Below, piece after piece: positions 1 to 23,584 of a DNA stretch of 23,584 bases. How positions within the stretch are numbered: position 1 is the stretch's first letter; each line of letters begins with the position of its first letter. The notes beneath the pieces were generated by a model that saw nothing but the letters and a program-made list of their open reading frames with translations, was not told the origin of the DNA and did not search any database. Location: NCBI GenBank assembly GCA_051530055.1, contig JBMGUZ010000042.1:1-23584 (forward strand). The letters are read 5' to 3'. Position numbers and translations under genes: made by a program. This DNA comes from Neoechinorhynchus agilis (Eukaryota; Animalia; Acanthocephala).

Positions 1-3000
1 GATCGCATTTCATCATAGCAAATTAAAGGATAAAATAGCACAAAAAAGAGAATTCGCCCGACATTTCAATCGCTAAGAATTCAAGTACAAATTAAGATGA
101 GAAATCTCGATATCATCATTCGTTCAGTAGAACGAAAGTTAGATTTTTGAGAAATTCATCATCTCACCTAAAGAATTCTAAAGAATGCTCAGAAGAAAAA
201 CTTTCGTCAATAAATCCGAAGACCATCGCGAAGATCGCATTTCATCATACCAGATTAAAGGATAAAATAGCACAAAAGTTAGAAGTCGCCCGAAACTTCA
301 ATCGCTAACAACTCTATTAAAAATTAAGATCAGAAATCTCGATATCATCATTCGTTCAGTAGAACGAAAGTTAGATCTTTGAGAAATTCATCATATCATC
401 TAAAGAATTCTAAAGAATGCTCAGAAGCAAAACTTTCGTCAATAAATCCGAAGACCATCGCGAAGATCGCATTTCATCATAGCAAATTGAAGGATAAAAT
501 AGCAAAAAAAGAGAATTCGCCCGAGATTTCAACCGCTAAGAATTCCAGTACAAATTAAGATTAGAAATCTCGACATCATCATTCGTTCAGTGGAACGGAA
601 GTTAGATTTTTGAGAAATTCATCATCTCATGTAAAGAATTTCAAGGAATGTACAGAAGCAAAACTTTGGCCAATAAATCCGAAGACCATCGCGAAGATCG
701 AATTTAATCACAGCAAATTAAAGGATAAAATATCACAAAATAGAGAATTTGCCCGAGATTGCAATCGCTAAGAATTCAAGTACAAATGAAGATCAGAAAT
801 CTCGATATAATCATACGTTCAGTAGAACGAAAGTAAGATTTTTAAGAAATTCATCATCTCATCTCAAAGAATTCTAAAGAATGCTCACAAGAAAAACTTT
901 CGTCGATAAATCCGAAGACCATCGCGAAGATCGCATTCCATCATAGCAAATTAAAGGATAAAAAAGCACAAAAAGGAGAATTCGCACGACATTTCAATCG
1001 CCAAGAATTCAAGTACAAATTAAGATCATAAATCTCGATATTATCAATCGTTCACTAGATCGAAAGTTAGATTTTTGAGAAATTCATCATCTCATCCCAA
1101 ACAATTCTAAAGAATGCTCACAAGAAAAACTTTCGTCGATAAATCCGAAGACCATCGCGAAGATCGCATTTCATCATAGCATATTAAAGGATAAAAAGGC
1201 ACAAAAAGGAGAATTCGCACGACATTTCAATCGCCAAGAATTCAAGTACAAATTAAGATCAGAAATCTCGATATTATCAATCGTTCACTAGAACGAAAGT
1301 TAGATTTTTGAGAAATTACTCATCTCATCTCCAAGAATTCTAAAGAATGCTCAGAAGCAAAACTTTCGTCAATAAATCCGAAGACCATCGCGAAGATCGC
1401 ATTTCACCACTGCAAATTAAAGGATAAAATATCACAAAAGGGAGAATTAACCCGAGAATTTAATCGCTAACAACTCTACTAAAAATTAAGATCAGAAATC
1501 TCGATATCTTCATTCGTTCTGTAGAATGAAAGTTTGATTTTTGAGAAATTCATCATCTCATCTAAAGAATTCTCACAAGAAAATCGTTCGTCAATTAATC
1601 CGAAGACCATCGCGAAGATCGCATTTCATCACTGCAAATTAAAGTATAAAATATCACAAAATAGAGAATTTGCCCGAGATTTCAATCGCTAAGAATTCAA
1701 GTACAAATGAAGATCAGAAATCTCGATATAATCATTCGTTCAGTTGAACGAAAGTACGATTTTTGAGAAATTCATCATCTCAAAGAATTCTAAAGAATGA
1801 TCACAAGAAAAACTTTCGTCAATAAATCCGAAGACCATCGCGAAGATCGCATTTCATCATAGCAAATTAAAGGATAAAAAAACACAAAAAGGAGAATTCG
1901 CCCGACATTTCAATCGCAAAAAATTCAAGTACAAATTAAGGTCAGAAATCTCGATATCATCATTCGTTCAGTAGAACGAAAGTAAGATTTTTGAGAAATT
2001 ACTCATCTCATCTCCAAGAATTCTAAAGAATGCTCACAAGAAAAACTTTCGTCAATAAATCCGAAGACCATCGCGAAGATCGCATTTCATCACTGCAAAT
2101 TAAAGGATAAAATATCACAAAAATGAGAATTAACCCGAGAATTTAATCGCTAAGAATTCAAGTACGAATTAACATCAGAAATCTCGATATCATCATTCGT
2201 TCAGTAGAACGAAAGTTAGATTTTTGAAAAATTCATCATCTTATCTCAAAGAATTCTAAAGAATGCTAACAAGAAAAACTTTCGTCAATAAATCCGAAGA
2301 CCATCGCGAAGATAGCATTTCATCATAGAAAATTAAAGGATAAAAAAGCACAAAAAGAAGAATTCGCACGACATTTCAATCGCCAAGAATTCAAGTACAA
2401 ATTAAGATCATAAATCTCGATATCATCATTCGTTCACTAGAACGAAAGTTAGATTTTTGAGAAATTACTCATCTCATCTCCAAGAATTCTAAAGAATGCT
2501 CAGAAGCAAAACTTTCGTCAATAAATCCGAAGACCATCGCGAAGATCGCATTTCATCATAGCAAATTAAAGGATAAAATAGCACAAAAAAGAGAATTCGC
2601 TAGAGATTTCAATCGCTAAGAATTCAAGTACAAATTAACATCATAAATCTCGATATCATCATTCGTTCAGTAGAACGAAAGTAAGATTTTTGAGAAATTC
2701 ATCATCTCATCTCAAAGAATTCTAAAGAATGCTCACAAGAAAAACTTTCGTCAATAAATCCGAAGACCATCGCGAAGATCGCATTTCATCATAGCAAATT
2801 AAAGGATAAAAAAGCACAAAAAGAAGAATTCGCACGACATTTCAATCGCCAAGAATTCAAGTACAAATTAAGATCATAAATCTCGATATCATCATTCGTT
2901 CAGTAGAACGAAAGTTAGATTTTTGAGAAATTCATCATCTCATCTAAAAAATTCTAAAGAATGCTCAGAAGCAAAACTTTCGTCAATAAATCCGAAGACC

Positions 3001-6000
3001 ATCGCGAAGATCGCATTTCATCATAGCAAATTAAAGGATAAAATATCACAAAAAAGAGAATTTGCCCGAGATTTCAATCGCTAAGAATTCAAGTACAAAT
3101 TAAGATCAGAAATCTCGATATCATCATACGTTCAGTAGAACGAAAGTAAGATTTTTGAGAAATTCATCATCTCATCTCAAAGAATTCTAAAGAATGCTCA
3201 CAAGAAAAACTTTCGTCAATAAATCCGAAGACCATCGCGAAGATCGCATTTCATCATAGAAAATTAAAGGATAAAAAAGCACAAAAAGAAGAATTCGCAC
3301 GACATTTCAATCGCCAAGAATTCAAGTACAAATTAAGATCATAAATCTCGATATCATCATTCGTTCACTAGAACGAAAGTTAGATTTTTGAGAAATTACT
3401 CATCTCATCTCCAAGAATTCTAAAGAATGCTCAGAAGCAAAACTTTCGTCAATAAATCCGAAGACCATCGCGAAGATCGCATTTCATCACTGCAAATTAA
3501 AGGATAAAATATCACAAAAAGGAGAATTAACCCGAGAATTTAATCGCTAAGAATTCAAGTACGAATTAACATCAGAAATCTCGATATTATCATTCGTTCA
3601 GTAGAACGAAAGTTAGATTTTTGAGAAATTCATCATCTCATCCCAAAGAATTCGAAAGAATGCTCACAAGAAAAACTTTCGTCAATAAATCCGAAGACCA
3701 TCGCGAAGATCGCATTTCATCATAGCAAATTAAAGGATAAAAAAACACAAAAAGGAGAATTCGCCCGACATTTCAATCGCCAAGAATTCAAATACAAATT
3801 AAGGTCAGAAATCTCGATATCATCATTCGTTCAGTAGAACGAAAGTAAGATTTTTGAGAAATTAATCATCTCATCTCAAAGAATTCAAAAGAATGCTAAC
3901 AAGAAAAACTTTCGTCAATAAATCCGAAGACCATCGTGAAGATAGCATTTCATCATAGCAAATTAAAGGATAAAATAGCACAAAAAGAAGAATTCGCACG
4001 ACATTTCAATCGCCAAGAATTCAAGTACAAATTAAGATCAGAAATCTCGATATCATCATTCGTTCAGTAGAACGAAAGTTAGATTTTTGAGAAATTCATC
4101 ATCTCATCTAAAAAATTCTAAAGAATGCTCAGAAGCAAAACTTTCGTCAGTAAATCCGAAGACCATCGCGAAGATCGCATTTCATCATAGCAAATTAAAG
4201 GATAAAATAGCACAAAAAGAGAATTCGCTAGAGATTTCAATCGCTAAGAATTCCAGTACAAATTACCATCATAAATCTCGACATCATCATTCGTTCAGTA
4301 GAACGAAAGTAAGATTTTTGAGAAATTCATCATCTCATCTCAAAGAATTCTAAAGAATGCTCATAAGAAAAACTTTCGTCAATAAATCCGAAGACCATCG
4401 CGAAGATGGCATTTCATCCTAGGAAATTAAAGGATAAAAAAGAACAAAAAAGAGAATTCGCCCGACATTTCAATCGCCAAGAATTCAAGTACAAATTAAG
4501 ATGAGAAATCTCGATATCATCATTCGTTCAGTAGAACGGAAGTTAGATTTTTGAGAAATTCATCATCTCATGTAAAGAATTCCAAAGAATGCTCAGAAGC
4601 AAAACTTTGGTCAATAAATCCGAAGACCATCGCGAAGATCGCATTTCATCATAGCAAATTAAAGGATAAAATAGCAAAAAAAGAGAATTCGCCTGAGATT
4701 TCAATCGCTAAGAATTCCAGTACAAATTAATATCAGAAATCTCGATATCATCATTCGTTCAGTAGAACGGAAGTTAGATTTTTGAGAAATTCATCATCTC
4801 ATCAAAAGAATTCCAAAGAATGCTCAGAAGCAAAACTTTGGTCAATAAATCCGAAGACCATCGCGAAGATCGCATTTAATCATAGCAAATTAAAGGATAA
4901 AATATCACAAAATAGAGAATTCGCCCGACATTTCAATCGCCAAGAATTCAAGTACAAATTAAGATCAGAAATCTCGATATCATCATTCGTTCAGTAGAAC
5001 GAAAGTAAGATTTTTGAGAAATTAATCATCTCATCTCAAAGAATTCTAAAGAATGCTCAGAAGCAAGACTTTCTTCAGTAAATCCGAAGACCATCGCGAA
5101 GATCGCATTTCATCATAGCAAATTAAAGGATAAAATAGCAAAAAAAAGAGAATTCGCTAGAGATTTCAATCGCTAAGAATTCCAGTACAAATTACCATCA
5201 TAAATCTCGATATAATCATACGTTCAGTAGAACGAAAATAAGATTTTTGAGAAATTCATCATCTCATCTAAAGAATTCTAAAGAATGCTCAGAAGCAAAA
5301 CTTTCGTCAATAAATCCGAAGACCATCGCGAAGATCGCAACTCATCATTGCAAATTAAAGGATAAAATTGCACAAAAGGGAGAATTCGCCCGAAATTTGA
5401 ATCGCTAACAATTCAATTAAAAATTAAGATCAGAAAACTCGATATCATCATTCGTTCAGTAGAACGAAAGTCAGATTTTTGAGAAATTCATCATCTCATG
5501 TAAAGAATTCTATAGAATGCTCACAAGAAAATTGTTCGTCAATTAATCCGAAGACCATCGCGAAGATCGCATTTCATCATATAAAATTAAAGATAAAATA
5601 TCACAAAAGGGAGAATTCGTCCGAGATTTCAGTCGCCAATAATTCAATTACAAAATAAGATAAGAAATCTCGACATCATCATTCGTTCACTGGAGCGAAA
5701 GTAAGATTTTTGAGATATTCATCATCTCATGTAAAGAATTCTATAGAATGCTCACAAGAAAATTGTTCGTCAATTAATCCGAAGACCATCGCGAAGATCG
5801 CATTTCATCATATAAAATTAAAGATAAAATATCACAAAAGGGAGAATTCGTCCGAGATTTCAGTCGCCAATAATTCAATTACAAAATAAGATAAGAAATC
5901 TCGACATCATCATTCGTTCACTGGAGCGAAAGTAAGATTTTTGAGATATTCATCATCTCACCTCTAAGAATTCTAAAGAATGCTCACAAAAAATCGTTCG

Positions 6001-6030
6001 TCAATAATTGCGAACATTATCGCATTTCAT
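1..6030. repeat. Tandem satellite array, ~26 copies of a ~232-bp monomer (open at the window's 5' edge)
   Basis: The anchor motif GAAGACCATCGCGAA|GATCGCATTTCATC recurs with GATCGC starting at 1, 233, 465, 696, 929, 1162, 1395, 1617, 1845, 2078, 2311, 2544, 2777, 3009, 3242, 3475, 3708, 3941, 4173, 4405, 4637, 4868, 5101, 5333, 5565 and 5796. Spacing is mostly 231-233 bp, with one 222-bp and one 228-bp unit from slippage deletions. The array degenerates at about 6000-6030. Confidence 0.98.
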
Positions 6031-6256: not shown

Positions 6257-6556
6257 ATGAAAAAGCAAGCAAATGCTGCGCCTGTGGGTGCATTTAAATC
6301 TCCTCTGAGGAGAGTTGATGACAAATGTTTAACTTCTGATTTGCGAAAAGAAATTGAAGACTTGGAGAAGGAGTTACTTGAACTCGGGAGTGCAAATGAT
6401 GTCGAATGCGATGAAAGTCGTCGTTATCGCGATCTTCTTCATGAATACAACGATATTAAAGACGTGGCTCAAATCCTGTTAGGTCAAATCGCATCAATTG
6501 ATCAATGTTCGATTAAGCAGGTGTCTGAACGGTTTGGCATCGGCGATAATGATTGA
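6257..6556 (+). CDS. SWI5: DNA repair protein SWI5 homolog (Swi5-Sfr1 Rad51/Dmc1 mediator), single exon, 99 aa
   Basis: The ATG at 6257 lies within ORF 6233..6556. Motifs GAFKSP, LHEYNDIKDVAQILLG and C-terminal FGIGDND match the recalled Swi5/Sae3 family (human GAFRSP, LHEYNDIKDVGQMLMG, FGLDMND). Confidence 0.93.
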   Translation: MKKQANAAPVGAFKSPLRRVDDKCLTSDLRKEIEDLEKELLELGSANDVECDESRRYRDLLHEYNDIKDVAQILLGQIASIDQCSIKQVSERFGIGDND

Positions 6557-6624
6557 GAATAGATTGTTTTTTATGTTACTTATGTTTTTCTTTTATTTAT
6601 TCTAGATCTCGATGCAATTCTGAT

Positions 6625-7686
6625 ATGCGATGTCTACAGGCGCCCATACTTTTAATAGTCGTATTCTGTAAGTTAATGTTTTTGAAAGTGTGTTTAAAAT
6701 ATGTTTGTTTTAGTACGAACGGCAGTTCTTCTTGAATGTTATGTGTGCCGAAATCAAGAGGAAGCTTATGGAAAATGTGCGAAGACTATAAGACAATGCA
6801 CACCAAATCAAACAACTTGTATGACTCTAGTACATCACACAGGTTCATCGTATTCGTTTTCTACTTTATCTACGACTTTATAATAGTCAATCTTGAATGG
6901 ACTGAAGGAATGCAAAGACGACATTATGTGAACAAATACTGTTCTACAGAGCTCGAATGCCAAAAATGCAAGTAATCATTTTTTAGCAGTTGCGAGATAT
7001 TTTCGAATAGGATCGTTTTTAGGTCCCGGTGTATCGTTTTTCTTTAACCAATTGATTTCATTACGTTGCGAAAAAATGTATTCTTAAAATGCGAATTTAA
7101 AGTTTTCATGCTTTATAAAACTCGATCGCTCTATGTGAGTGTGTAAGCTAAAATTGTATTTTATAAAGTTAAAATCATTAAAGGAATTCAGAGGCGCGAA
7201 TTTCGAAGTGACGATAAACGTTTGGTACTCGAATTTCGCAAGTTTTGCCAGTTCGAAAATTGAGCTCTCTCGTATTTACTGAAGGCGGGCATCTCCGCAC
7301 CCAATCAAAAAGTGCATCGATATTTGTAGTTATTTCAAACGGACAGAGTACATTTGTTTGAAAAATTGTTGCTTGTTTATTATAATATCTATGAAGCAAA
7401 GGTCTTTTCTTGAAAGACTCGCGTAAGTCATCCCACGAATAATATCCCCAATTTAGATCTTTTGGCCTTCTCTAATGTTTGTAACGGCCGTGACGGCCAA
7501 CGTGACTGGGCTTGTATAGACTGCTGTCTAGGCGACAGGTGCAACTATTATGTTACGGTAAAGTTTTTTTCTTCGATTATCCATTATTTTTGTCTTCATG
7601 TTTAGTTGTCCAGAAGCTGTCAATTGAGAATGATGAGTGTGACTAAGATTTTAGCCACTCTCCTTCCGTTTGTATGTTGTAATTGA
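6625..7686 (+). CDS. bou: Boudin-like Ly6/uPAR (three-finger) GPI-anchored protein, 5 exons
   Basis: Manually spliced exons are 6625-6667, 6714-6842, 6887-6967, 7457-7557 and 7606-7686. They give a signal peptide MRCLQAPILLIVVFLRTAVLL, then ECYVCRNQEEAYGKCAKTIRQC...TTC...KYCSTELECQKYLLAFSNVC...DWACIDCCLGDRCNYYVT, then a hydrophobic tail. The 12-Cys pattern and DRCNYY end match recalled arthropod boudin. Intron 3 needs a GC donor. Confidence 0.85.
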
Positions 7687-7972
7687 CGCTACCTTTTTAC
7701 TGAAGAGTGAGCCGCAAACGTTGAAATTTTGCTCCGGCATATCACTAAGACATTGTACGACTAAAAAATTAGAAAGTTGCCATGTTTCACTTTCATTTGA
7801 TAGTCGTGGAATATCGAGAAGAGTTTTACGTTGAATTCTCGAAGACAATTCTTGATTATTTCTAAAAGGGAAACGACACGCGCTGCAAATTTTCTTATTC
7901 ACTCTGAAGTTTTGACTCACCATCGTCGTCTATTCGTTTTCCCTTTGCTCTTCAAGATCTACGTAGCTGTAA

Positions 7973-8500
7973 ATGTCATCTTTAAGCCCTGAACAACTTG
8001 ATACGATCAGTGAAGTATTCGCGACCTTCGACGATAAAGGAGACAACCGTATTAGTGTAACGTACTTGGGAGATGTAGTGCGCGCTCTTGGATTAAATCC
8101 GTCAAACGCTAAGATTGCTCACGTAAGTAAAGACTTTCAAAAAGATGGTCAACAGGGACCAGTTCGAATCACTCTTGAACAATTCCTTCCAATTTACGAG
8201 AATCTGTCAAAGCATGCTCAAGCTGAATTTCCCAGCAAAGATGAGTTTATAGACGGCCTTAGATCGAGTCTCTTAGTTAAATAAGCTCTTTTATAAAGAC
8301 AAAGAGATTTCGGACGTAGAGTTTTCGATCGAGAGATGAATGGCCTTATTTCAGCTGCTGAACTACGACACCTTTTGACCACCATCGGAGATAAACTCAG
8401 TGAAGAGGAATGCGAGTTACTCCTTCACGGATTCGAGGACAAGAACGGAAACGTTCATTATGAAGATTGGATTAGCGCATTGATGAATCCTTCGACCTAA
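7973..8500 (+). CDS. Myosin essential (alkali) light chain, EF-hand protein (MYL6/Mlc-c-like), 2 exons, ~156 aa
   Basis: Exon 1 (7973-~8262) encodes [14 protein letters not shown]...[13 protein letters not shown]...EQFLPIY...DEFIDGLR. Exon 2 (~8320-8500) encodes [30 protein letters not shown]...GNVHYEDWI. An AATAAA signal is at 8529-8534. The exact junction is non-canonical (see findings). Confidence 0.92.
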
Positions 8501-8900
8501 TCCTTGCGGAAGCATAATATTTTTCTTTAATAAAAATGAACTTTAGTGATATTCACGTTTATTTGAAGCTTATCAGGTTCTTTTGATTCTTTAAAGATAT
8601 GCTCAAGTCAGCGATCTTGTTTAATAAAAAGATTCATCCAACTTTAAGTTTGAAACATATGGTAAGTTCTCGTATGTAAAAAATTGAAATCGGGTATGGG
8701 AAGCCGTTTACTTTTTAAGTGTATTTGAAGTGATTATCTCTTACACGATTGAAGATTATTTTCATTGGGCACGCAGCCCACCGCTCTGAGTGAGGGAAGT
8801 GATTAAATCACTGAAACCCTGAACCACACAGTTAGAAGTTTGTAGATCCCCCACGGATCCTCAGATAACTCCCAAGGAGGCGGAATTCACAACTGAATTT

Positions 8901-9028
8901 GGAATTATTGCTTAGGTCTACACTCGGTAAATGATTATTTATTGAAGACGTTTCGAACCTCGTCGTTCCCCGGTGTAGACCTAAACAATAATTCCAATCA
9001 CATTCCTCAGTACCCCACATATCGACAT
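8901..9028. mobile_element. Partial copy of the palindromic MITE found in full at 22049-22303
   Basis: It shares TACAC(T/C)CGGTAAAT...TTTCGAACCTC and CCGG..TGTAG.CCTAAACAATAATTCCAATCACATTCC...CACATATCGACAT with 22106-22270. Most of the inner right hairpin arm is deleted. Confidence 0.85.
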
Positions 9029-9343
9029 TTTTATATAAGTGAATTTTCTTCAGCAGTATTTCGTCTCCCTTGCTTACAAGTCATCGGCGATAATGGATTT
9101 TGAACTCTTTGACACTGAAACAGGAAATGGGGCTAAAGTTCCCTAGACCACGTCCACACAACTACGTAATGTACCGATTATGCCGGTTTTATATCTTAGC
9201 ACAAGTGATCAATTTTTTATCTTGTCTCGATAGCCGTTTAGATTTTTTCCAAGTGTTGAAGTGAATATTCCCTACACGTCTGATTATTTTAATTGGACAC
9301 ACAGTCCACCGATATGAGCCTGGGAAGCCATTGAATCACTTAA

Positions 9344-9616
9344 AACGCTTACAAACTCATAACCTTATGGATCAAGGAATCTGCTCCTTCGTACTCGTTG
9401 AGATTTGTGTGAGGAACTGAAGGATGGAAAATGTTGGGGCGACGCGAGTGTTGTAAGTGTGAGCAAAAGGAGAAATTTGTGGTAGAAATTGAAGAAGAGG
9501 AAGAGAATGAAGGCGCTTTGAGTGTTTGTGAAAGATTAGAGAGAGGTGTTTTTCTAAGGGAACGAGTTCGAAGGAGCAGATTCCTTGATCCATAAGGTTA
9601 TGAGTTTGTAAGCGTT
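9344..9616. mobile_element. Foldback/MITE-like element with 56-bp terminal inverted repeats
   Basis: 9344-9399 (AACGCTTACAAACTCATAACCTTATGGATCAAGGAATCTGCTCCTTCGTACTCGTT) is the reverse complement of 9561-9616 with 1 mismatch. The 161-bp core is purine-rich. Confidence 0.8.
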
Positions 9617-9739
9617 GATTTATTTATTTAATAATTTTTGGCACTGCAAGCTCCTACAACTTGAGCGCTGTTAAAAATTGAAATCGGATGTGGAAAAATC
9701 TCTAATTCATTATAAACTATTATTTCTATTCGTTTAAAG

Positions 9740-10176
9740 ATGGATAAAACAACCGAGGGGGAAAAGAAGTTGAAATTCAATAGACCGCAACTTGGTCCTG
9801 GTAGATCGCTCGTTGACTGGGTCAGGCTATGTTCATCGATGCAGATCAAATCCAATATTCAAAGATCAATAACAACCTCTGAATTAGCTGAGCACAATAA
9901 ATCAGACAATGCCTGGACTTGTCTGTGCGGTGAGGTTTACAACATCAGTGAGTATTTGGAGTATCATCCAGGAGGCAAAGAAGAACTTATGAAAGCTGCA
10001 GGAATCGACGCCACCAATTTGTTTAATCAGGTGCGTTTTATTGCAGTTTTGAACCATCTACGTTGGCTCTTATCTAGACTCATCGGTGGGTAAATTTCAG
10101 AAAAATACTAGCTCCTTTTCGAATTGGATATCTTCAAAGGAACGTATTCTTGGAAAGGAAATCCCAATCCCAATAG
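9740..10176 (+). CDS. Cytochrome b5 heme-binding domain protein, homologous to the N-terminus of CYB5R4/NCB5OR
   Basis: Exon 1 is 9740-10030, followed by a GT-AG intron (10031-10077) and exon 2 (10078-10176). The protein contains LGPGRSLVDWVRL, the heme motif EYHPGGKEELM, and the second axial His in THRWVNF. The stop is at 10174-10176. No reductase domain was recognised downstream. Confidence 0.85.
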
Positions 10177-10765
10177 TCAACCTCAGTCAATTTATGAGTG
10201 CGATTCTACAACACTAATGGTGTGCTCATTTTCAGAATTTTTCGTGTGTGACGAATACTCATTGACTGTAACTAAAACTTTTCGCTACGCTCTGTCCTTT
10301 AAATATTTTAAAAAACTAGCATAATCGTTAAATTACAACAGCGTAGTGTTTTAAAAACAGAATGTCTATTTTGGAACATTCGGTATAGCAGTTAGAAATC
10401 CTACTAAGCACAAATTGTACTACGCTTTCAAATTCTATTTTAAGTTCAAAACTTTCAATACTAAATTTCTATGGATTGTGCAACAAAAGATGATTTCGAG
10501 ATAGCATTTTCTTTAAAAATAATCTTTGCATTTACTTCAAAAATAATCTTAGTAAAGAATAGATTTCACGTCCAATCTCTGATGCGGTGCAATAAAATTC
10601 GATTTGTGTTAATCACAATTATTTTTAATTTTATTTTTCTAGACATGGACACTCCGACTGTTAAATGAAAAGTCCAGGCGAAGGGAGAAATCTTTTCGAC
10701 ATATGGCAAGTTCAAGAAAGGGCATGAGGGTTCGTTGGCAAGGAATACGCATCCCATTAAAAGTG

Positions 10766-13070
10766 TTATTATTTGGAAAAAAACTAATTATACAAAAAGT
10801 ATTTACAAACTTTCACGCCAGCGCTTTGGATCACTCAGCTGCCGTCCTGGTCTGCACAGCCAGACTTATGTTTTTGTGGAGGAATGCTCTTGATCTCGGA
10901 TCGCCAGTGATTCGTCTCAATTTCTTAGACAATTGTTTGACCAGGTCCTGCGTCGGGATACCAAAAGGTCTTAGCATCTCGACGCCAAAGGGAACAAAAT
11001 AATGATTTCGACTCAGGTCCCGGTATTTAGTCTTTTTGCTTTCCTCAGCGGCGGTTGCTGCTCCTCTGATTTTAATCGTGGCGAATTTTATGTTGCTGGC
11101 TGCGAGCGTGTCCACGAACGTGGCGTCCCAGAGAATTCATTTTCCTTCTCGTCACGGGAATGCTGTGACACCGTCCGGTCTACGGCCATCGAGTCGGCAA
11201 AGATTACAAGGCTCTAGGATGTTGGGCGCATTCACAGTATTCTTGGCACGACTATGAATTTCGTTCACTGAAGCGTGTCGTGGGTACCTTCCGCTTGATT
11301 GTCGACAGACAAAACCATGGCGTCCCGATGGTTCCACGGTCGCTCCGCAGCAGCAGCGATGGGATGTGCACATCGGTACCCCAAGTCTCAGGGACACTGC
11401 GATCCTTACTGTTTCGCCGGAGAGAAGGGTACCCGCAGGAGGGATTGGGAGAGCGTTGAGCCAAGCACCCGATTCTCTAGTCGAGACTGCGGCCAATCGA
11501 GTTCGGTTCACCAAGTCACGAGAATCTGGAACTAAAGAGTTATGAATTCTCCTTACAAGGGGTGCGGGTGCCTGCTCGCTACCGGAATCTTCACACCAAA
11601 GATTAATAGCCTCCACGAAGTCTTCATCCAACCTGTAATTCTCGTCAAGAAAGCACTGAACAATGACAGGCCTTCCCCGTCTCGTCTAATTTTGCCAGTT
11701 TATCCTTATGTCTAAAAAAAGGCGCTATGCGCAACTTGCAGAGCAATTTCATAATGAAGAGGGTATTCTTGATCAGGAATGGAGCCTCATGTGAGGATAA
11801 TTCATTAACTCGTTTGCACAACACTGAAAGTTGCAACTGAAGATTAGCAGTCTGTGCTTCCACGTTAGAATTAAAGATAATGCTTCCTAGAAGGGGCCAA
11901 GGCTCAGTTCTCCACGTTCATCACCAGTCTCGCATTTCCCAGGTTTAAGTTCAATGCCAATTATCGTCTTCTTCACGCGTGTCTCCAAATCGTGCTGTAC
12001 TACAGAGGGGTTCCCTCCGAGAGTGGCATCATCCAAAAACCAACCGTTAAAGATGAATTCGAGAGAGTAAGCGACGGGATTGACTGCGAGTGAGAAACTA
12101 TTTTGCAAAAAGGATCCCTTGTTGAATTCCTCTTTCTGACCACAAAACGTGGTTGTTCAACAACAAAGGAGTTAAAGTCCCATAGGCATTAAATAAATAG
12201 TGAAATGTTTTGAGTTTCCGGTGATTAACGTACGGAGTGAATTATCAACTGCCTCTATACCGCAGGGGTATACAGCAGCCCAACTAATTCTTGCAAAGCT
12301 GCATGTCTACTTTTTCTGCGATCTTTTTATTCAACATTTTTGCTGTTATACATCGCATAATTGCTCCAATTGCAGTGGAACGAATCCCACCTGCCCTTTT
12401 CCCGCGAGAGCACAGTGATGCACCCAAAAATAGCTCAATTGCTTTCGAAATCAACTCTTCCCCTGCAAATTGGTCGACCAAGCGCGTTTGTGCATCTCGA
12501 AGGGACAGAGCAGCGTCACCTACTGAAAAGGAAATCATATCCTTTAGGTGTTGGGATCCGAGCCCGTGAAGCCCGTGAGCTGATCCGTTCGCAAATGAGG
12601 AGATCGCCATCTTCACTTTTGATTTGAATGGTGAAAAATTTATTATCGTATGGAAGGACGAGGATTCCTTGAAATGCTACTGACCGCAGTTACTGGGATG
12701 TTTGGAACGAAGCGTTCGCAAAGTTTCTTCGTCATCTTTGGCGAGACTGTCCATTGATGATAAAAGGTGAACCGCTTCTCTGACATCTCCGTCTGCGAGC
12801 TTCGAAAAAACGCGCCCAACAAGTGACCGATTTGGGTTTCGGCTGTGGTCAGCCTTCTGGGCACGCTCCTTGCGTAGCGCGCATGCTGTTGAAAGGCATT
12901 GAGTAAATTTTATGTCAAATGAACTTGCTTGCTCTTTTAGTTTTGTGGTCAGAGACCCCAGAAACATCACTGAGTTAGTCTCGATGCAGTCTGCCAATAG
13001 AGTGAATCACTTTGCGGTTTGATATCGCGCGCCACTTGCGATTCTTTTCAGAACGTTCCTGGGCAGAACG
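10766..13070 (-). mobile_element. Decayed CRE-clade non-LTR retrotransposon (RT plus restriction-like endonuclease), 5'-truncated; ends approximate
   Basis: Collinear - strand fragments, broken by stops and frameshifts: VLKRIASGAR (~13060), GDVREAVHLLSS...L.SKHP, FANGSAHGLHGLGSQHLKD, GASLC...GGIR, the RT core WFLDDATLGG, ESGAWLNALP, the Zn knuckle HRCCCG...H...C, the REL RPDGVT.FP*..GK*ILWDATFVDTLA, and the C-terminal ISLAVQ. No APE domain was seen. Confidence 0.9.
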
Positions 13071-13169: not shown

Positions 13170-13399
13170 TGTTTCAATTTCACCTAGCGATATTCACTCA
13201 GAAAATTGATTTATATTGAAATTTTTCGGTTTTTTCGTTGGCCTTCTTCAGTCAGATCTAGAATGTTTCGCAAGTTTGACGCTGAAGTGACAAACTTGCG
13301 AAACATTCTAGATCTGACTGAAGAAGGCCAACGAAAAGGCCGAAAAATTTCAATATAAATCAATTTTCTGAGTGAATATCGCTAGGTGAAATTGAAACA
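13170..13399. repeat. 230-bp near-perfect palindrome (109-bp arms, 12-nt loop)
   Basis: 13170-13278 is the reverse complement of 13291-13399 with 2 mismatches (TT opposite GG). The loop is ACGCTGAAGTGA. Confidence 0.95.
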
Positions 13400-13564
13400 A
13401 TAATGATTAATTTCTTTACAACATTCATGTGTCTTTATCAAGGAAACTTCCAACCGAAATATCGAATTCAATAAATTATTTCAATTTTCTGCCATAATTG
13501 AACAATGATGATGGACTGATTTTTGTATGCATGATTTTATAAACAAACACAGTCGGAATTATGA

Positions 13565-13612: not shown

Positions 13613-13924
13613 ATGGATCCACCATCTGTAAAACCATATATGGCATTTTCTTTACTGGCGATTTTAACATGCCCTCCACTCGGTTCACTTGCTCTGATCA
13701 GAGCCATTCAATCGTACAAACTATCGGACCCTGCTAATGATATTTATTGGCCGGCAATGGCCATTGAATACGGTCGACAGTCCTTCCGCTTATCGATTAT
13801 CAGTATTATTATTGGTCTAATCTTCACTATTGGTATCCTGATTTGGAAGCTAAACACTATAGAGGGCCGGAGCAGTCAAGGTGGACGCTATGATTTTACG
13901 TATCAGGACATCAAGTTGATCTAA
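13613..13924 (+). CDS. CD225/dispanin-family membrane protein (IFITM/PRRT/TMEM233-like), 103 aa
   Basis: PYMAFSLLAILTCPPLGSLALIRAIQS resembles the CD225 C-x-PLG-xxA motif. A second hydrophobic helix follows (LSIISIIIGLIFTIGILIW). Confidence 0.75.
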   Translation: MDPPSVKPYMAFSLLAILTCPPLGSLALIRAIQSYKLSDPANDIYWPAMAIEYGRQSFRLSIISIIIGLIFTIGILIWKLNTIEGRSSQGGRYDFTYQDIKLI

Positions 13925-15966: not shown

Positions 15967-16703
15967 GGAGTGTGTGAACTTTAATTCTGAAGGATGCTCA
16001 TCGTATTCTTCAATCTAGTTAAAAAATCCCTTTGTTTCACACACACACATATTCTTTAATCTTATCGAGAGAAAATCCATATCGGGGTGGTAAATTTTGA
16101 CCCGGTTAAAAATCATTTTATTGTTCGCGAAATATTTAGGTTTTTAAAGCAATGATTGATAAGTCGAGATTTCCTCTCTTTCGAAATACTTCGGGAACAA
16201 TAGAATGATTTTTGATCGGGTGTTAAAAGGCATATTCTTTAGTTAGTTAAAAGTTTACTACAAATTTCTTGTGAGTACTATTGCTCGTAATGGTGAATGT
16301 CAAGACATTTTAAGATGATTTCGGGGCTCTATCATCTCTTGGCCTGTTAAAAATGGTCACTCTCGCCCGATCATTCTTTTTTAAAAGAGCTATGTTGAAC
16401 TCAAAAACGTTTTCTCCCTTTTTTCGAAGACTGTCGTCGCGCAAAACTCCCCAAAGACGGTAGAAACGACAATTGTTGAACTTGGAGACTTTGAATTGAG
16501 TGTTCGTCGCGTGGCATCATAATGATAGCTTTGTTCGTTGCTCTCTTATCATCGCAAATCGTTGAGATTCATTCGCGTCTTATAACTCTCACACTATTTC
16601 AGTTTTGTATCTTTCCTTCTTCTTGTGGTGGTGGTGGTGCTGGTTGTTTTATTCGAATCCATACGTTTTAGTGTTTGTTGCGGATTTCAACTCCATTTAT
16701 TAG

Positions 16704-19700
16704 ATGGTAGAGCAAGTCTCGTTGGCTTATCGCGACCAAGATGCTGACGTTCTGCCACTTAAAAGCATTTCTCAGTCGTGCGCACCGTCCGCATTCCCAA
16801 AGACGACATTCGGAATTCTCCACAGGCAGTTCACTCAATGGATAATGAAACAAAACTACCCTCTGTCATCGTCCATAAAACCAGCGAATTCAGACGAACA
16901 TAACAATAGTGAAACTAAATTCGATCCCACGAATGCTACAGATCCAACGAAGATGGGAGCTAACTATCTTGAGCATGAAATGTCTGCATTGTCGATGATT
17001 GTTCATCGCGTAAAAAACAACTTGTTCGTCGACAAATTTAACACCGCTGGATACAGTGGCAACGGCAACGGCGGCGGTGGTGGTGGCGGTGTAGACCTTA
17101 AGTGGTTAGCTGGGTTCAATCGGGCTCTGGGCGAGAGTTGGCAGGAGATTGATGATCCGAAACTCGTCGAACACATTGAACGCCTTCGTGATTTGTTTAT
17201 ACATTTTCTTATCGACAGTGTGGATTTGGAAGCGATCGAAAGAAATGAGGCGACGGACGAAAGATTAAAACACTCAACCACAAAATCGCTCAAATGTGAG
17301 GAAACACCGGCGGATCAACCTGTGATCGATATAACATTCGTACGGAACATGAGCAGATCTTTTCTGTGGACCTTTGACGGCATCCGAATGCTCGTAGAAT
17401 CAAGTCTTCCCATGTTTGGAACTGCGAAACATCCCCTCATCAACCTTCAATTGAACGATGTTCACGAACCGGTGACCGTATTAACCGGTCTTAATTGTCT
17501 CCTTGATGATCTCCTTGGCGATGTTCCTGAACTTGCAATGTGCTACCATATTGACAATGATGTACAACGCTATGACTTCGTCCGAACCGATAACATCGCA
17601 CCCAAACCGGACGCTTCTACCGCGGAAATGGTTCAAGCCTATGCCCCAAGCATTCTAGCCTTCCTAAAAGAAAAAGCCAATCGTCAAGGCCATACTTATT
17701 GGCTATTTAAAAGCATTTCTGACGATAATGTTCGTTTGTATGACCTGACAAGCATTTGTCGATCATATGATGTTTATAATCCTTACATTTACCCGATCAT
17801 TGAGCTTATGTACAGGACTGCTTTTAAAATGTGCAAATCTAAAAATGCGAGACAAAATTACCAGGGAACTATTAGGAGTCTCCTCACACAATGTCTCAGT
17901 TTCTCAAGGCAACGAAAATTCCACGATCTGTATTGCTATGCAAGTTATCTTCTCAGTGACCTCTTTGTCAGTGAAGATATTAAATGCTCGGTTGGTGGAG
18001 GTAAGCTCTGTGGTATGTTTTGTATCTATAATTTATATTTCAAATTTATGACTTAATTATGACCGTTTTAAGTACACATCTTCATTCATTAGCACTTAGA
18101 ATTCAGTCTCATTTGCTGAGTAAAATCAATATTGATTTACAAATTATTTCCATTGACATTTTGTACGACGCACCGGATGTTTTACATTGTTAAAGATAGG
18201 AAATTGGCAAAAAACTTACTAGTGATCACCCTACAAACCAGATTCCATTTTAAAGTTAATATTTTAATATCAACCGATATCCTTTTATAACTAAATCTCA
18301 CGACCCTTAACTTTTAGACCACGACTATGCGACAATTGCTGACGATTTGGACATTGACTGTATTACTTACAGTCTCCAAGCACTGTCGCTCCACTGTCCA
18401 GAGAGCATTAAAGCAGCTTTAGAATGCGCCCCTCCAGCTGTAAAAACTTCAACTTCCAAGAAGCAAAAACGTTCCCCAGAGTACGCTCAGACGCTCCATG
18501 ACCGTGCCACTCGCGCAATTGAAAAGCTCGCGGAGGCCTTAGCCATACACGAGCATAACCGTATTCCTCTTCCATTAGTGAGAGAAGCGCTAGAAAATGG
18601 AATCGAAGACCGTGATCTAGTTTCAAGCCTCTATTTGAACAACCAATTTGGATTTCAGCGTACGAATCGCGTAATCACCATTCCAACGCTTCTTTTGCAA
18701 AAGGCGTTTTCAAGCTATGTTTGTCTTGCAAACTCTAGTTTCCTGTCCAAAAAGTACGGCCGATGTCTAAAATGTCTTAAAATTGCTCTAGATTGCATCG
18801 ACTCTTTGTATCATTTGGCAAAAGTAAACGATGTTCCACTGGAGATATGCAAATTGTTGGTTATTGCAGGTGATTGCTATATGGCGATTTCTCAAGAAAA
18901 GGTTGCAATGTCCCTTGTACTCGACCAATACAAACAACTAAACGATAATGATAAGGCTGTCGAGGAAGCTGCCGATGCCTTATATGGAGATGATCTTCAT
19001 GAAGGGGAAGTGAGTTGGATTGACGATCTCGGATGGATCACAATGATAACGTCCAATTACAAACACTTGTTGACCACGGCGGATCGTGCATTCTATGTCG
19101 CGATTGAACTTGCAACTGATCGAGATAAGGCTTTTAAAGACGATTGCATGCGGCGTTTAGTGGGATGTCGTAATGCGTACGGCACGGAATTGATCCAATA
19201 CGTTAATGACGTTCTTACTGACATGGGTCTAAAGATCTGGAAAGAAGGAGAAGAGGATCAAGTCAAATTGGTGGTGGAACAAAAGATCAACGAAGCTCTT
19301 TCTGTTCTCGAATCGGGTTTAAATGAACTTGACAATCTGCCTGACGACAAAGAAAGTCGCGTTCTTCTTTTGATGAACACAGGCAAAGTTCACAAAACTT
19401 CTCTAAGTGCATATAGAAGATTTAATAGTGTCGATGACAGTGAAGGTAGTGCAAAATCAAGGAAAACCGAGATTGACCTAATGACTAATATAATCGATTC
19501 TTATCAAAAAGCAGAGGACATTCTTCGCTCAAGCAAGACTCAGCATCATCTTTTTGAAGAAGTCGTATGGGAGCGAACTACGAATTATTTATCACGCGCC
19601 TTTGCTCTTCATGAACAGTGTAGTGATCAACTTTCGATCGACAGTCAATACGTTGATAGTCTTACTCACGTTCTCGCCGATTTTAAGTCCCTTAATCCAA

Positions 19701-20668
19701 CTTGCCATCAAAGACAAGTAAAACTCACATATCTATCGGGATACATTTATCATCAGATCGCTACTCTCTATGCGGGTGCCATTCGTTCAACGGACATGAG
19801 CTCTCGGAGGCTCAAACAGTACAGAGGGATTTGCAAAAATTATTATGAGAATGCGATGACTCTCTATCACAAGGTCTTTGGTACAAGCAAGAATTTACCC
19901 ATTATGGCTCTAACGGAACTTGTGGCAAGAAAAGCCGATTGCGCTACGAATCTCATGAGGATTGGAATTGAACTCTTTGCACAGGCCAGACTGCAATGGG
20001 ATTCGAAACCAAAGGGCGGCAGTGAGCGGACTATCACTGTGGCAAAACAGCAAATACAGCAAAGAATATCTACTCGATCTTGGGTCAAAGTGCTTTTTCG
20101 GGTTTAATATTCAAGCAAAATATATTTGATAATTTTCAATATTCCGTACTGGAACCAAAAAGACGTTTTAATCTTTTTGTAGAACGCTGCTGAAATTATT
20201 GAATTTCATCTAATTTATGGTAATATCATTTTTTGCCAAATTATCTTAGATTTGCATATGTTGCTATTTTTAGTCTCTCCGAATCAATACTCCGCTTAAT
20301 CCCCAAGAACTGAGAAGTTAAGCACAATTGAAGCTTTGATTGGCAGTCTCCAAACGGATTTTTTGCCTGCAGTCAAGGCGGCTCACGCGGAGCAGTCCTA
20401 CAACGAGTTTATGCACCTTTTTACACAATGGATGCAGAACATAGAGGAAGGCATGCTTTCGGTGTTGGAAGTACTTGACCTTTCGTCAAACCCAAAGACG
20501 AAGGAACTAGTTGCCGTTGTTGGTGAACAGCTAAAAGTGATCGTAAATACGTACGGATCGAAATGCGAGAGTGGACAGGTAAAAGAAGAAGACATCGAGA
20601 TTACAAAGAAAGTATTCGAAGGGCTTATAAATGAACTAATGTCAACGTCATACACTTATAAGCAGTGA
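16704..20668 (+). CDS. EDRF1: Erythroid differentiation-related factor 1 (EDRF1) homolog
   Basis: Exon 1 is 16704-18000 (GTAAGC donor). Exon 2 starts at 18318 (phase 1, in frame) and runs to ~20090. A probable last exon is ~20308-20668. Motifs FVRN...LWTFDGIRMLV.SSLPMFG, VPEL.MC.H, GHTYWLFK...DNVRLYDLT, LLLMNTG, V.WE.TT.Y and IYHQIATLY match recalled human EDRF1. The 3' exon junctions are unresolved. Confidence 0.88.
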
Positions 20669-20792: not shown

Positions 20793-21008
20793 CTATCTGT
20801 CTTTAAAGTCCGGCTGTTGGTCACTGTAATCTAGTTGGCTAAGTGAACAATTGGCGCGGTATATCATGTCCAAGATTCCTTCGACACTGTCGGTATCAAC
20901 TTGTATTGATTCCATAACTTGTTCCGTCTTCCGAGAATCCCCCACTCGCTTCATTCGACGAATAATGTTATCCAGTCCTTTAAGATCCGAAGAATCTGAG
21001 TCAGTCAT
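20793..21008 (-). CDS. Orphan 71-aa protein or terminal exon, no recognisable family
   Basis: The ORF starts at ATG and is preceded in frame by the acceptor TTCTCTCTAG (12 nt upstream) and an X-box-like site. It is convergent with EDRF1. Confidence 0.4.
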   Translation of the reverse strand: MTDSDSSDLKGLDNIIRRMKRVGDSRKTEQVMESIQVDTDSVEGILDMIYRANCSLSQLDYSDQQPDFKDR

Positions 21009-21046
21009 TGTTTTTCCGTTCTAGAGAGAAGCAGATTTGAATCACG

Positions 21047-21060: not shown

Positions 21061-21746
21061 GGACAATCGTTTTTACATTTAATTTCTAATTGATTTTACT
21101 ACACGTAAAGCCCGAATTATAAGGAGATCGCGCCCTGTAAGTAGCTTTCCCAACAAATATTGCACAATGAAGATTTTAGCTGAACGGTGTCCTGAATGTT
21201 TTCTGAAAACTTTAAACATGTCGCTATGTTTCGATGAATTCAAGAATGCGATCGCGGGTATTCTAAGAGTGATCGGGAGATGCTCTTGTCGTTATCGATT
21301 TTTGTCAGCTTTTATCGACAGCTATACTCCTTAAAGCAGCTATAAAACGTTTAAATAATTTGACTGGGTAATAAGTGAAATTGTTTCTATGTATAAAGAC
21401 GACATCTTAGTTTCTGTCTTGCTTTTCTTATATCCTTTTCATATCAAGATGAAGTCTTGATTGACGGCTTCTTTTCGTAACGATGAAATCGTTCCTTATT
21501 TATCGACATTAGCGGCTACCATGAAGTGTAATTTTAATGAGTATCATTTTTTTTAATTACAAATTTCGAAAAGTGCACATGTGTTAAAAGATAATTTCTA
21601 GCTTTTTCATCTATCGGGAGCGATTTTGCCGTATAACCGATTTCAAGATTTGTTAGTTTATGTGTGTTTTTCCGTCCATCTAACGAACTTCCAACCATGG
21701 GACATTCATTATCTATTGCCTATAAGCTACTTTGCTTCAGATTAAA

Positions 21747-23351
21747 ATGTCAAGAAAGACTTGCCTTACCACTTCTTCGTGCTTGTCCGCATCATCATTC
21801 GTCCTTGCTCCAATGGTAGAATATGGCCAACTTCCATTTCGACTACTAGTCCGCCGATATGGAATCGGTTTATGTTTCACGCCTATGTGGCACCCGCGTT
21901 TGTTTTTGACCGATGAATCATACCGCAAAATTGCTTTGACAAGTTCAGATGAAGATTATCCTCTTGTATACCAAGTAAGCAAACACAACCTCGTCTATTT
22001 TGTTTTTGTTTATTAAAAATTAACAAAAATGATTTAATTTTCATTTAATATTTCGTCCTCTACGTGGGACTTCAGAATTGTTTGTATACAACTAAGCTGA
22101 AGAATGAATTATTGTTTAGATTTACACCCGGTAAATCATTATTTATTAAAGAAGTTTCGAACCTCCGACGTTCCGACGAGGTTCGAAACGTCTTTAATAA
22201 AAATCATTTACCGGGTGTAGGCCTAAACAATAATTCCAATCACATTCCCCGGTACCTCACATATCGACATGTTCTGAAGAAGTCCCACGTAGAGGACGAA
22301 ATACTAAATTAAAATTAAATCATTTTTCTCAATTTCGAATGACCAAAATCAATCTATGGATAACATCTGTACAACAACCTTATCTATACTGATGACTGTG
22401 ATTTTAGTTTTGTGCAAATGATCCTGATTTGTTTGTTGAATGTGTACGACTAGTAAAAAGCGATTGCGTGGGTGTCGATTTAAATCTCGGGTGTCCTCAA
22501 AATATTGCAAGGCGTGGACATTATGGAGCGTTTCTTCAAGATGAGTGGAACCTTATTTCGGAAATAGTAGGCCGGGCTGCTAACATGGATCAAGCATGTG
22601 AGATTAGTGCCAAGATTCGTGTTTTTGACGACGTACACAAAAGTGTTCAATATGCACAGATGATCGAAAAAGCCGGCTGCTCTGTGTTAAGCGTTCACGG
22701 ACGAACAATCGATCAAAAAGGTCAATTCACGGGACTTGCCGATTGGAATAAAATTAAGAAGATCAGGTGGGTTTCAGTAATCTACTAATCTTTCCTCACC
22801 TTCGTAGAGAATCAATCGAAATTCCGGTCATCGCAAACGGAAATATTCGGTGTCTTGAAGATGCCCAAACTTGCCTTGAGTTAACTGGATGTAATGCGGT
22901 TATGGTGGCTGAGGGTGCGCTTTACAACCCTGCAATAATGACGGGTAAACATTTACCAATATGGGACATTGCCAATGAATTTTTGAGCATTGTTGATCAA
23001 AATCCAGTTCGGCGTCTTTCCGTGAGAGGATATTTCCACAAACTATTCGCAAACGTCTTTGAGCGACATCCTCTTCTGAGAGAACAGCTCAATATCACTC
23101 AATCAAACAAAGAGTTGCGCTTTATCGTCGCTAATATCGAAAAGGAAGTAATGTCCATAAATCAGGTACCATCGTCTAATCAACTAACGCCATTTAAAAT
23201 TCCATATTGGTTTTGTCAATCCAAAGTTATAAAGGATAAATGTGACTTTGTCATAGGACAATTCAAATTGGGACAAATTTTTGGTTGCTTTTATGGCATA
23301 GTTTTAGTGCTTCTGGAGGTAAAAACGTTCAATCGGCCACGATTAATTTAG
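21747..23351 (+). CDS. DUS1L: tRNA-dihydrouridine(16/17) synthase DUS1L
   Basis: Exons are 21747-21974, 22408-22766 and 22808-(23351, or an earlier splice), with GT-AG introns. Motifs are LAPMV, CFTPM, YQ|FCANDP, DLNLGCPQNIARRGHYGAFLQDEW, KIRVF, VHGRT..QKG, and IPVIANGNI. The C-terminus is uncertain. Confidence 0.95.
22049..22303. mobile_element. MITE with 24-bp perfect TIRs, TA flanks and a 131-bp internal palindrome, in DUS1L intron 1
   Basis: ATTTCGTCCTCTACGTGGGACTTC (22050-22073) is the exact reverse complement of 22279-22302. TA occurs at both ends. The inner palindrome spans 22106-22236 with a 12-nt loop. A second partial copy is at 8901-9028. Confidence 0.88.
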
Positions 23352-23584
23352 ATATTAAATTTACGGTCTGAAAGTAGGTGCTTTCTTACAGTTTAAAATG
23401 TTAGAAATTTATAATTGTTAATTGAGTACGATTTTATGCTCCTTAGCATGACTTTGTGATCTAAAATCAAATTATATCTAGTCGTTCAATTGTATTCAAG
23501 CAAACTTCCTCATGAAAAATGAGACTATTGAAATCTCTTAACGACAAAAGTCATATTTCTCCTTTGATAGAAAAGTCAAAACGA

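Follow-up and report, generated by a model that had tools for sequence, protein, structure and literature searches.

Two pairs of neighbouring, unrelated genes on a contig of the acanthocephalan Neoechinorhynchus agilis, SWI5 with a Ly6/uPAR-like gene and the myosin essential light chain gene (MLC) with the cytochrome-b5-domain gene CYB5, are arranged on one strand with very short distances between them (68 and 98 nt). The contig, JBMGUZ010000042.1, is a complete unplaced sequence of 23,584 bp, all of which was analysed and is referred to below as the window. We tentatively interpret the SWI5-Ly6-like junction, and probably also the MLC-CYB5 junction, as operon-type junctions resolved by spliced-leader (SL) trans-splicing. 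By analogy, an SL-resolved dicistron would be the single most likely mechanism in an animal with a trans-splicing sister clade and operon-like gene density, although we give it less than an even chance. The idea builds on the observed gene order, spacing, base composition and acceptor-like sites, and on a layout seen in bdelloid rotifers; we regard it as a plausible hypothesis and not as a finding.

N. agilis, a member of the Eoacanthocephala, parasitises mullets, and its 46.2-Mb assembly consists of three major scaffolds with 13,655 BRAKER2 genes and 31.6% coding sequence (PMC12690905). The translation of the EDRF1-like open reading frame (ORF) of the window (16704-18000 + 18318-20107) is 100% identical to ACOME3_007478 hypothetical protein [Neoechinorhynchus agilis], which is encoded both on chromosome CM121342.1 (16.38 Mb) and on JBMGUZ010000042.1. 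From position 6444 on, the window is 99.9% identical to CM121342.1 at ~12.05-12.076 Mb, with 12 substitutions in 17 kb and one 248-bp insertion, and because of this identity we read the contig as an uncollapsed haplotig. A comparison of the two haplotypes as a test of constraint was uninformative, since there are only 12 substitutions to compare.

The SWI5-Ly6-like and MLC-CYB5 junctions

The SWI5 protein matched the Pfam family Swi5 (PF07061) with E = 1.3e-17 and 64.1 bits, above the gathering score (cut-off 22.1). The alignment reaches the end of the profile (80/80) at SWI5 residue 98, and exactly the same protein of 99 amino acids (aa) is annotated on the chromosome copy. Direct reading of the sequence bore out what an earlier interpretation made from the letters of the window (the sequence-only reading) had claimed about the junction that follows: 68 nt (6557-6624) separate the SWI5 stop from the Ly6-like ATG at 6625, the gap is U-rich (A15, C7, G9, T37, or 54% T), and it contains no AATAAA. 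ATTAAA is likewise absent, and only a one-base variant, AATAGA, was found, at 6558-6563. The T content of this spacer lies in the top 0.3% among all 68-nt windows outside the tandem array at the beginning of the contig. The predicted acceptor-like sequence TTATTCTAG is also present, with its AG at 6604-6605; 13 of the 15 bases preceding the AG are pyrimidines, a content equal to that of the strongest cis acceptors here. When poly(A) signals were looked for within 400 nt after each stop codon, or up to 60 nt beyond the ATG of the next gene, the Ly6-like, CYB5 and annotated EDRF1 ends were also found to have neither AATAAA nor ATTAAA, and the absence of AATAAA is therefore weak evidence.

Our model of the gene downstream of SWI5 has five exons (6625-6667, 6714-6842, 6887-6940, 7457-7557 and 7606-7686) and encodes 135 aa, with a signal peptide, 10 cysteines, the ending CCxxxxCN and a hydrophobic tail; the donor of the third intron is uncertain (6941 or 6972). 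The label Ly6, proposed by the sequence-only reading, agrees with the signal peptide, the cysteine pattern and the hydrophobic tail of this model, but the Pfam matches stay below threshold (CD59, E = 1.3e-4 and 22.1 bits, cut-off 33.9; UPAR_LY6, E = 0.068 and 14.1 bits, cut-off 24.8). At 6672 the two haplotypes differ: the first Ly6-like intron has the donor GTAAGT on this contig and GTAAAT on the chromosome. This difference may be the reason that no Ly6-like exons were modelled on the chromosome copy.

The second junction, which had been overlooked, extends over 98 nt from the MLC stop at 8500 to an ATG at 8599. Its elements follow each other in the order AATAAA (8529), T-rich stretch, TTCTTTAAAG ending in AAG at 8596, and ATG. 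This layout is more classical than that of the SWI5-Ly6 junction, where the AATAGA variant at 6558 is the only 3'-end signal in the spacer. The ATG at 8599 would open a putative first coding exon of CYB5, which ends in a perfect donor (ATG/GTAAGT, donor at 8662) and has an AATAAA inside it, at 8623. A further AG, at 9738-9739, directly adjoins the ATG at 9740 of the main CYB5 exons, as had been stated. The MLC protein is 81% identical to its closest relative (P0001, a UniParc-only entry with no DNA attached, probably from a species related to N. agilis) and 48-50% identical to bdelloid light chains; besides P0001, nothing from an acanthocephalan other than N. agilis was found in the homology searches.

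The sequence-only reading had joined SWI5, Ly6 and MLC in a single operon-like cluster. The SWI5-Ly6 part of this cluster is indeed tight, but the distance between the Ly6-like gene and MLC is 286 nt. Because of this distance, and because MLC is likely a strongly expressed muscle gene, a single SWI5-Ly6-MLC operon is a weaker claim than two separate tight pairs.

Spacers of 68 and 98 nt leave no room for a 3' untranslated region (UTR), a promoter and a 5' UTR in series, and thus point to either overlapping transcription units or a common precursor. In the case of a common precursor resolved by SL trans-splicing, the upstream and the downstream gene would be transcribed together, the upstream mRNA would be cleaved and polyadenylated within the short T-rich spacer, and the downstream mRNA would obtain its 5' end by SL trans-splicing at a pyrimidine-tract AG near the ATG (6605 for the Ly6-like gene; 8596 or 9739 for CYB5). 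The AGs at 7956, 16703 and 21740 would serve as SL acceptors for singly transcribed genes. The co-transcription, the existence of an SL in N. agilis and the use of these AGs are what we infer.

Acceptor-like sites, gene models and competing explanations

Acceptor-like sites had also been claimed for other starts in the window, and most of them were found as described. An AG at 7955-7956 lies 16 nt before the MLC ATG at 7973, with a second AG at 7965-7966; the AG at 16702-16703 directly adjoins the EDRF1 ATG at 16704, so that two AGs (9739 and 16703) are placed directly at an ATG; and the AG at 21739-21740 precedes the ATG of DUS1L, at 21747, by 6 nt. The site proposed for an orphan gene at 21021 did not survive: TCTAG is present, with AG at 21023-21024, but the next ATG on the plus strand (21053) opens an ORF of nine codons, and there is no annotation. 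A 71-aa ORF on the opposite strand (20793-21008) gave no Pfam match.

To score such sites, we required an AG no more than 35 nt upstream of the start that was preceded by at least 11 pyrimidines in 15 nt, a threshold chosen after seeing the data. A simple pyrimidine count was used, and a position-weight matrix was dropped, since there are only 10 cis introns. Six of the nine candidate starts have an acceptor-like AG by this measure, compared with 11-15% of random non-coding positions or ATGs on either strand; our own binomial estimate of the excess is ~5e-4 for all nine starts and ~0.01 for seven independent genes. The 15 nt preceding the AG contain 6-13 pyrimidines in the ten cis acceptors of the window and 10-13 in the candidate sites. 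Upstream pyrimidine content is 51-72% for seven of eight starts, and 34% for an ORF of the CD225 type.

A number of observations weigh against trans-splicing at these sites. When the 61-nt upstream stretch of each gene was itself shuffled, p values of 0.11-0.70 were obtained (Fisher combined p = 0.17); the excess of acceptors is therefore gone once local composition is kept, and pyrimidine richness is the unusual property. Such richness fits a polypyrimidine tract, and a compositional bias of promoters or 5' UTRs would give it equally. The candidate sites at 7956, 9739 and 8596 end in AAG, whereas nine of the ten cis acceptors end in TAG. A three-codon upstream ORF (ATG 6612) lies between the AG at 6605 and the Ly6-like ATG, SWI5 is left without a canonical poly(A) signal inside the spacer, and two candidate acceptors, 6605 and 9739, have cis donors assigned to them in the public annotation. 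An Rfam scan of the window (E<=1) returned microRNA and small nucleolar RNA (snoRNA) families only and no SL RNA family, and the bdelloid SL was not matched in the window at up to three mismatches; the SL RNA searches covered ~30 kb of the 46-Mb genome, so these negatives say little. No N. agilis transcript contig was found in the collections searched, where an exact look-up of SWI5 led to genome records only, and searches with MLC and EDRF1 yielded only genome-derived proteins for N. agilis. The monogonont Brachionus plicatilis apparently lacks an SL (PMC1925144); an SL in Acanthocephala is therefore not to be assumed, as the trait varies within Syndermata. For rotifers, no operons have been reported (PMC7986045). 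Despite several transcriptome studies, the literature searched contained no report of SL trans-splicing or operons in Acanthocephala, and neither is mentioned in the two N. agilis genome papers.

Only slightly less likely, in our view, is that trans-splicing plays no part and that the genes are separate, overlapping transcription units in a 46-Mb genome, with the Ly6-like promoter inside or at the end of SWI5 and with SWI5 transcripts ending in or past the spacer. We attach similar weight to the view of the acceptor-like sites that goes with it, in which the T- and pyrimidine-rich stretches before the starts would be a compositional trait of promoters and 5' UTRs, and the AGs would be there by chance. 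The local-shuffle control, by which composition alone accounts for the AGs, agrees with this. So does the background: with the requirement relaxed to at least 10 pyrimidines in 15, 20-26% of general non-coding positions qualify within 35 nt. Canonical poly(A) signals are often missing after genes here, the CD225-like start at 13613 has no acceptor-like site, no SL is reported for any acanthocephalan, and Brachionus apparently lacks one, too. Overlapping units would nevertheless require a promoter embedded in coding sequence, and 68 and 98 nt are very short distances for independent same-strand animal genes. The recurrence of the layout in SL-using bdelloids and the two AGs placed directly at an ATG also argue against separate units.

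Public gene models bear on a further explanation. The sequence-only reading had called the acceptors unpaired, which the public annotation contradicts for 6605 and 9739: in its BRAKER models they are cis-paired, with donors at 6532 and 8662, respectively. The models were made by BRAKER2 with RNA-seq hints (PMC12690905). In KAL7667510.1 (184 aa, this contig), 6531 is joined to 6606 and the model continues through the first Ly6-like exons; in KAL7672595.1 (150 aa, chromosome copy), 8599-8661 is joined to 9740. Both were reconstructed exactly. The CYB5 model on this contig, KAL7667512.1 (111 aa), leaves exon 8599-8661 out. We consider it unlikely that all sites are ordinary cis acceptors, 9739 being used with the donor at 8662 and 6605, 7956, 16703 and 21740 with donors of upstream non-coding 5' exons. 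On that reading, the Ly6-like gene could take its donor from an exon shared with SWI5, one promoter giving two alternative mRNAs. The exact match of the two models and the perfect donor at 8662 speak for cis splicing, and the donors of N. agilis vary so much (GTTCAT, GTCTCT, GTGCGT, GTACCA) that nearly any GT could do. A known parallel for one promoter with two mRNAs is the cholinergic-locus type, with a shared promoter and cis alternative splicing, which likewise yields two unrelated proteins and has an acceptor just before the second ORF; it needs a common upstream 5' exon, none of which was identified here, and SWI5 would sit in an intron of the Ly6-like gene.

The gene models themselves reduce the force of this evidence. 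The donor of the 6532-6605 interval is weak (CG/GTTTGG), and joining 6531 to 6606 removes the conserved Swi5 C-terminus and moves the signal peptide to an internal position. Because the end of the Swi5 domain is cut off and the signal peptide becomes internal, the annotated SWI5-Ly6 fusion appears biologically implausible. The two copies, 99.9% identical, received different models: SWI5 has 99 aa on the chromosome and is part of the 184-aa fusion on this contig, CYB5 has 150 versus 111 aa, MLC 103 versus 157 aa, and DUS1L 334 versus 145 aa. The gene models are therefore unreliable. Gene predictors typically fuse genes where two adjoin with continuous coverage. Since a full-length Swi5 needs the unspliced 99-aa product, the fusion looks like the predictor's handling of two abutting genes, and we take it as a weak sign of read-through and not as proof of cis splicing. 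In the case of CYB5, an AATAAA within the putative upstream exon, at 8623, also speaks against cis use. Finally, a 5' UTR intron ending 0-20 nt from the ATG in five or six of eight genes would be unusual.

Short spacers and spliced leaders in related animals

Acanthocephala and Seisonidea are sister to Bdelloidea (PMC12256650). This relationship is consistent with the EDRF1 searches, in which the next-best matches after N. agilis are bdelloid rotifers, at 25-28% identity. According to PMC1925144, which cites Pouchkina-Stantcheva & Tunnacliffe 2005, more than 50% of bdelloid mRNAs carry a 23-nt SL, derived from SL RNAs of ~105 nt. Bdelloid loci were reached via homologues of EDRF1 and MLC, and the gap between same-strand neighbours was measured as the distance between called coding regions (Table 1). 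Overall, these gaps are 49-184 nt long, contain 32-51% T, and end in ...TTCTAG, ...TTTTAG or ...TTTCAG at 0-40 nt before the ATG; by eye, the SWI5-Ly6 spacer (...ttatttattctag, 19 nt before the ATG) is indistinguishable from them. As bdelloids are known SL users, this common layout is the strongest indirect argument for SL trans-splicing at the N. agilis junctions. They are the closest lineage with a proven SL, and at their loci the gaps between same-strand genes are likewise short and T-rich, closing with TTCTAG or TTTCAG just before the ATG; unlike for bdelloids, no SL is reported for acanthocephalans, and the bdelloid SL sequence was not found in the window. The layout also suggests that operons in bdelloids may so far have escaped notice because nobody searched for them.

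A FYVE-type gene, DUF924 and MLC follow in this order on one strand in Adineta ricciae (L010, 2089-3000) and in the bdelloid-like contigs L012 and L013, and the DUF924-MLC part is also found in L014 and L015; judged by gene order, this is a candidate conserved bdelloid operon. The DUF924-MLC contigs L012-L015 were considered as dicistronic transcripts; L012 and L013 were rejected as such, since an intron of the upstream gene is retained in them, and were taken as genomic. No recognisable leader was seen at the 5' ends of contigs L004 and L006, which come from environmental samples and encode the MLC homologue P0003 (the homologue P0004 is likewise from environmental samples), or at the 5' ends of P0010 and P0011, from Logan assemblies of single sequencing runs.

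In the chaetognaths Paraspadella gotoi and Spadella cephaloptera, about half of the genes are trans-spliced and 18% are in operons (PMC12460157, PMC2481426). There, genes of one strand count as an operon if fewer than 250 bp separate them and SL evidence is available (PMC12460157); the SLs are not operon-specific, and spacers are sometimes very short (PMC12460157, PMC2481426). Chaetognaths also belong to Gnathifera, and by the spacing of less than 250 nt on the same strand both N. agilis junctions, SWI5-Ly6 (68 nt) and MLC-ATG 8599 (98 nt), are candidates; the Ly6-MLC interval, at 286 nt, is not. Unlike in N. agilis, chaetognath leaders and polycistrons are documented by expressed sequence tags and Iso-Seq; the SLs are unrelated and are considered to have arisen independently.

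In C. elegans and Oikopleura, operons occur in compact genomes and join unrelated genes of one strand, with spacers of ~100 nt or less that are U-rich between the poly(A) signal and the acceptor. The compaction of the N. agilis genome is comparable with theirs, and the MLC-CYB5 junction (AATAAA, T-rich stretch, AG, ATG) fits this type best. Unlike the operons of these animals, the SWI5-Ly6 spacer has no AAUAAA and there is no sign of an SL2-type leader.

Other features of the window and implications

The features of the window, together with the bdelloid gaps, are listed in Table 1. The statement that all genes are on the plus strand is correct for the recognised protein genes and fails for the window as a whole, as the minus strand carries an snoRNA-like array and a retroelement remnant.

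Table 1. Features of the window and same-strand gene gaps at bdelloid loci
Feature	Position or gap length	Strand	Basis, or end of gap
C/D snoRNA-like array, 233-bp unit x26	1-6014	-	Rfam scan, repeat analysis
SWI5 coding sequence, single exon, 99 aa, stop TGA 6554-6556	6257-6556	+	Pfam Swi5
74-nt GT..AG interval, annotated cis intron fusing SWI5 to Ly6-like exons	6532-6605	+	KAL7667510.1 (184 aa)
Acceptor-like site tcttttatttattctAG, 19 nt before ATG 6625	6588-6605	+	direct reading
Ly6/uPAR-like gene, five exons (our model), no annotation of its own	6625-7686	+	exon enumeration
Acceptor-like sites before MLC: tccctttgctcttcaAG (G at 7956), acgtAG (G at 7966)	7940-7966	+	direct reading
Myosin essential light chain (MLC), 157 aa, one 54-nt intron 8268-8321	7973-8500	+	homology
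AATAAA, 28 nt after MLC stop	8529-8534	+	motif scan
Acceptor-like cttttgattctttaaAG (G at 8596), ATG 8599, putative 63-nt CYB5 first coding exon	8580-8661	+	KAL7672595.1
CYB5 putative extra first exon	8599-8661	+	model KAL7672595.1
Acceptor tttctattcgtttaaAG directly before ATG 9740	9723-9739	+	cis use (donor 8662) in KAL7672595.1
Cytochrome-b5-domain gene CYB5, main exons 9740-10030 + 10078-10176	9740-10176	+	Pfam Cyt-b5 E = 1.4e-22, exon enumeration
Putative retroelement remnant, GC-richer	~10.7-13 kb	-	composition, ORF pattern
CD225-like ORF, unannotated	13613-13924	+	Pfam CD225
Acceptor-like tcaactccatttattAG directly before EDRF1 ATG 16704	16687-16703	+	direct reading
EDRF1, exons 16704-18000 + 18318-20107, 1028 aa	16704-20107	+	identical to ACOME3_007478
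ORF annotated as part of separate 113-aa gene (gene range 20217-20668)	20336-20668	+	public annotation
Acceptor-like aagctactttgcttcAG, 6 nt before DUS1L ATG	21724-21740	+	direct reading
DUS1L (tRNA-dihydrouridine synthase 1-like), 334-aa model, 4 exons	21747-23541	+	homology/annotation
Adineta vaga L009, gap after EDRF1 (8445-8549)	105 nt, 51% T		...catattctag, 24 nt before ATG
A. ricciae L010, RUN/FYVE to DUF924	160 nt		...attttctag/ATG
A. ricciae L010, DUF924 to MLC	184 nt		...gattttag, 31 nt before ATG
Bdelloid-like contig L012, FYVE-type gene to DUF924	~128 nt (upstream stop estimated)		...gtttttctag/ATG
Bdelloid-like contig L012, DUF924 to MLC	95 nt		...ttttttctag, 40 nt before ATG
Bdelloid-like contig L013, DUF924 to MLC	49 nt		...ttattttcag, 16 nt before ATG

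The array consists of ~26 copies with ~90% identity, each with a C/D-box snoRNA-like gene; the chromosome copy also carries this array. Matches to Rfam were below threshold (21 to snR54 at 32-40 bits, cut-off 50, and one to SNORD59). The guide, ...AACUUUCGUUCUACUGA, is complementary to 18S rRNA and varies between units (e.g. CUUACUUUCGCUCCAGUGA). In animals, it is unusual for independently placed snoRNA genes to form tandem arrays. The 233-bp array was considered as an SL RNA array and rejected, as C and D boxes and the 18S-complementary guide are found on its minus strand; GTAAG...ATTTTTGA on the plus strand is the complement of the snoRNA guide and is not conserved between units.

The 248-bp insertion by which this haplotype differs from the chromosome copy (13173-13420) is a nearly perfect palindrome resembling a miniature inverted-repeat transposable element (MITE); ~12 bp are common to both ends of the corresponding gap in the haplotype alignment, and the palindrome is the source of spurious Rfam matches to MIR2630 and mir-1791. 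Long MITE-like inverted repeats are also found at 8880-9000 and 9340-9600, in the putative first intron of CYB5, and at 22030-22320, in intron 1 of DUS1L, and one of these three produced a weak Rfam MIR2599 match. The minus-strand block at 10700-13000 has 44-49% GC, against ~36% around it, and several broken ORFs, and by composition and ORF pattern alone we take it for a retroelement remnant; the one ORF tested, of 159 aa, had no Pfam match. More ORFs for reverse transcriptases resembling those of long interspersed nuclear elements lie just past the end of the window (L002, ~20.4-23.4 kb).

The CD225-like ORF is a single exon of 103 aa that matches Pfam CD225, the interferon-induced transmembrane protein family, with 27.4 bits (cut-off 27.1). 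An AATAAA overlaps its stop, and it has the sole start here that lacks both an acceptor-like site and a pyrimidine-rich flank. EDRF1 of N. agilis (1028 aa) falls ~100 aa short of its orthologues in bdelloids (1121-1134 aa). The ORF at 20336-20668, which is in the EDRF1 frame and is annotated within a 113-aa gene with a 3-nt first exon, may be the missing C-terminus; the lengths fit, but no signal came from tblastn or from a hidden Markov model of the C-terminus, and potential splice sites there are weak.

Among animals, SL trans-splicing and operons have a scattered distribution and debated origins, and nothing has been reported for Seison or Acanthocephala. That acanthocephalans and, by the layout of their loci, bdelloids arrange some of their genes as polycistronic units that SL trans-splicing resolves is possible but rather doubtful at present. 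If true, SL trans-splicing would be reported for the first time in Acanthocephala, and operons for the first time in Syndermata; this would be a known mechanism in a new lineage and no new kind of system, and the origin of the rotifer SL would lie at or before the Hemirotifera ancestor. The BRAKER models fuse or split genes at these junctions (the SWI5-Ly6 fusion, the two CYB5 models), and such errors pass into analyses of expression and of drug targets. A negative result would also be informative, since expression without trans-splicing would then be shown for animal genes only 68 nt from each other. With a positive result, the trait could be dated, and a strongly reduced lineage of parasites would join the animals known to have operons; such a result would also help to explain how a macroscopic parasite manages on a 46-Mb genome after the loss of many transcription regulators.

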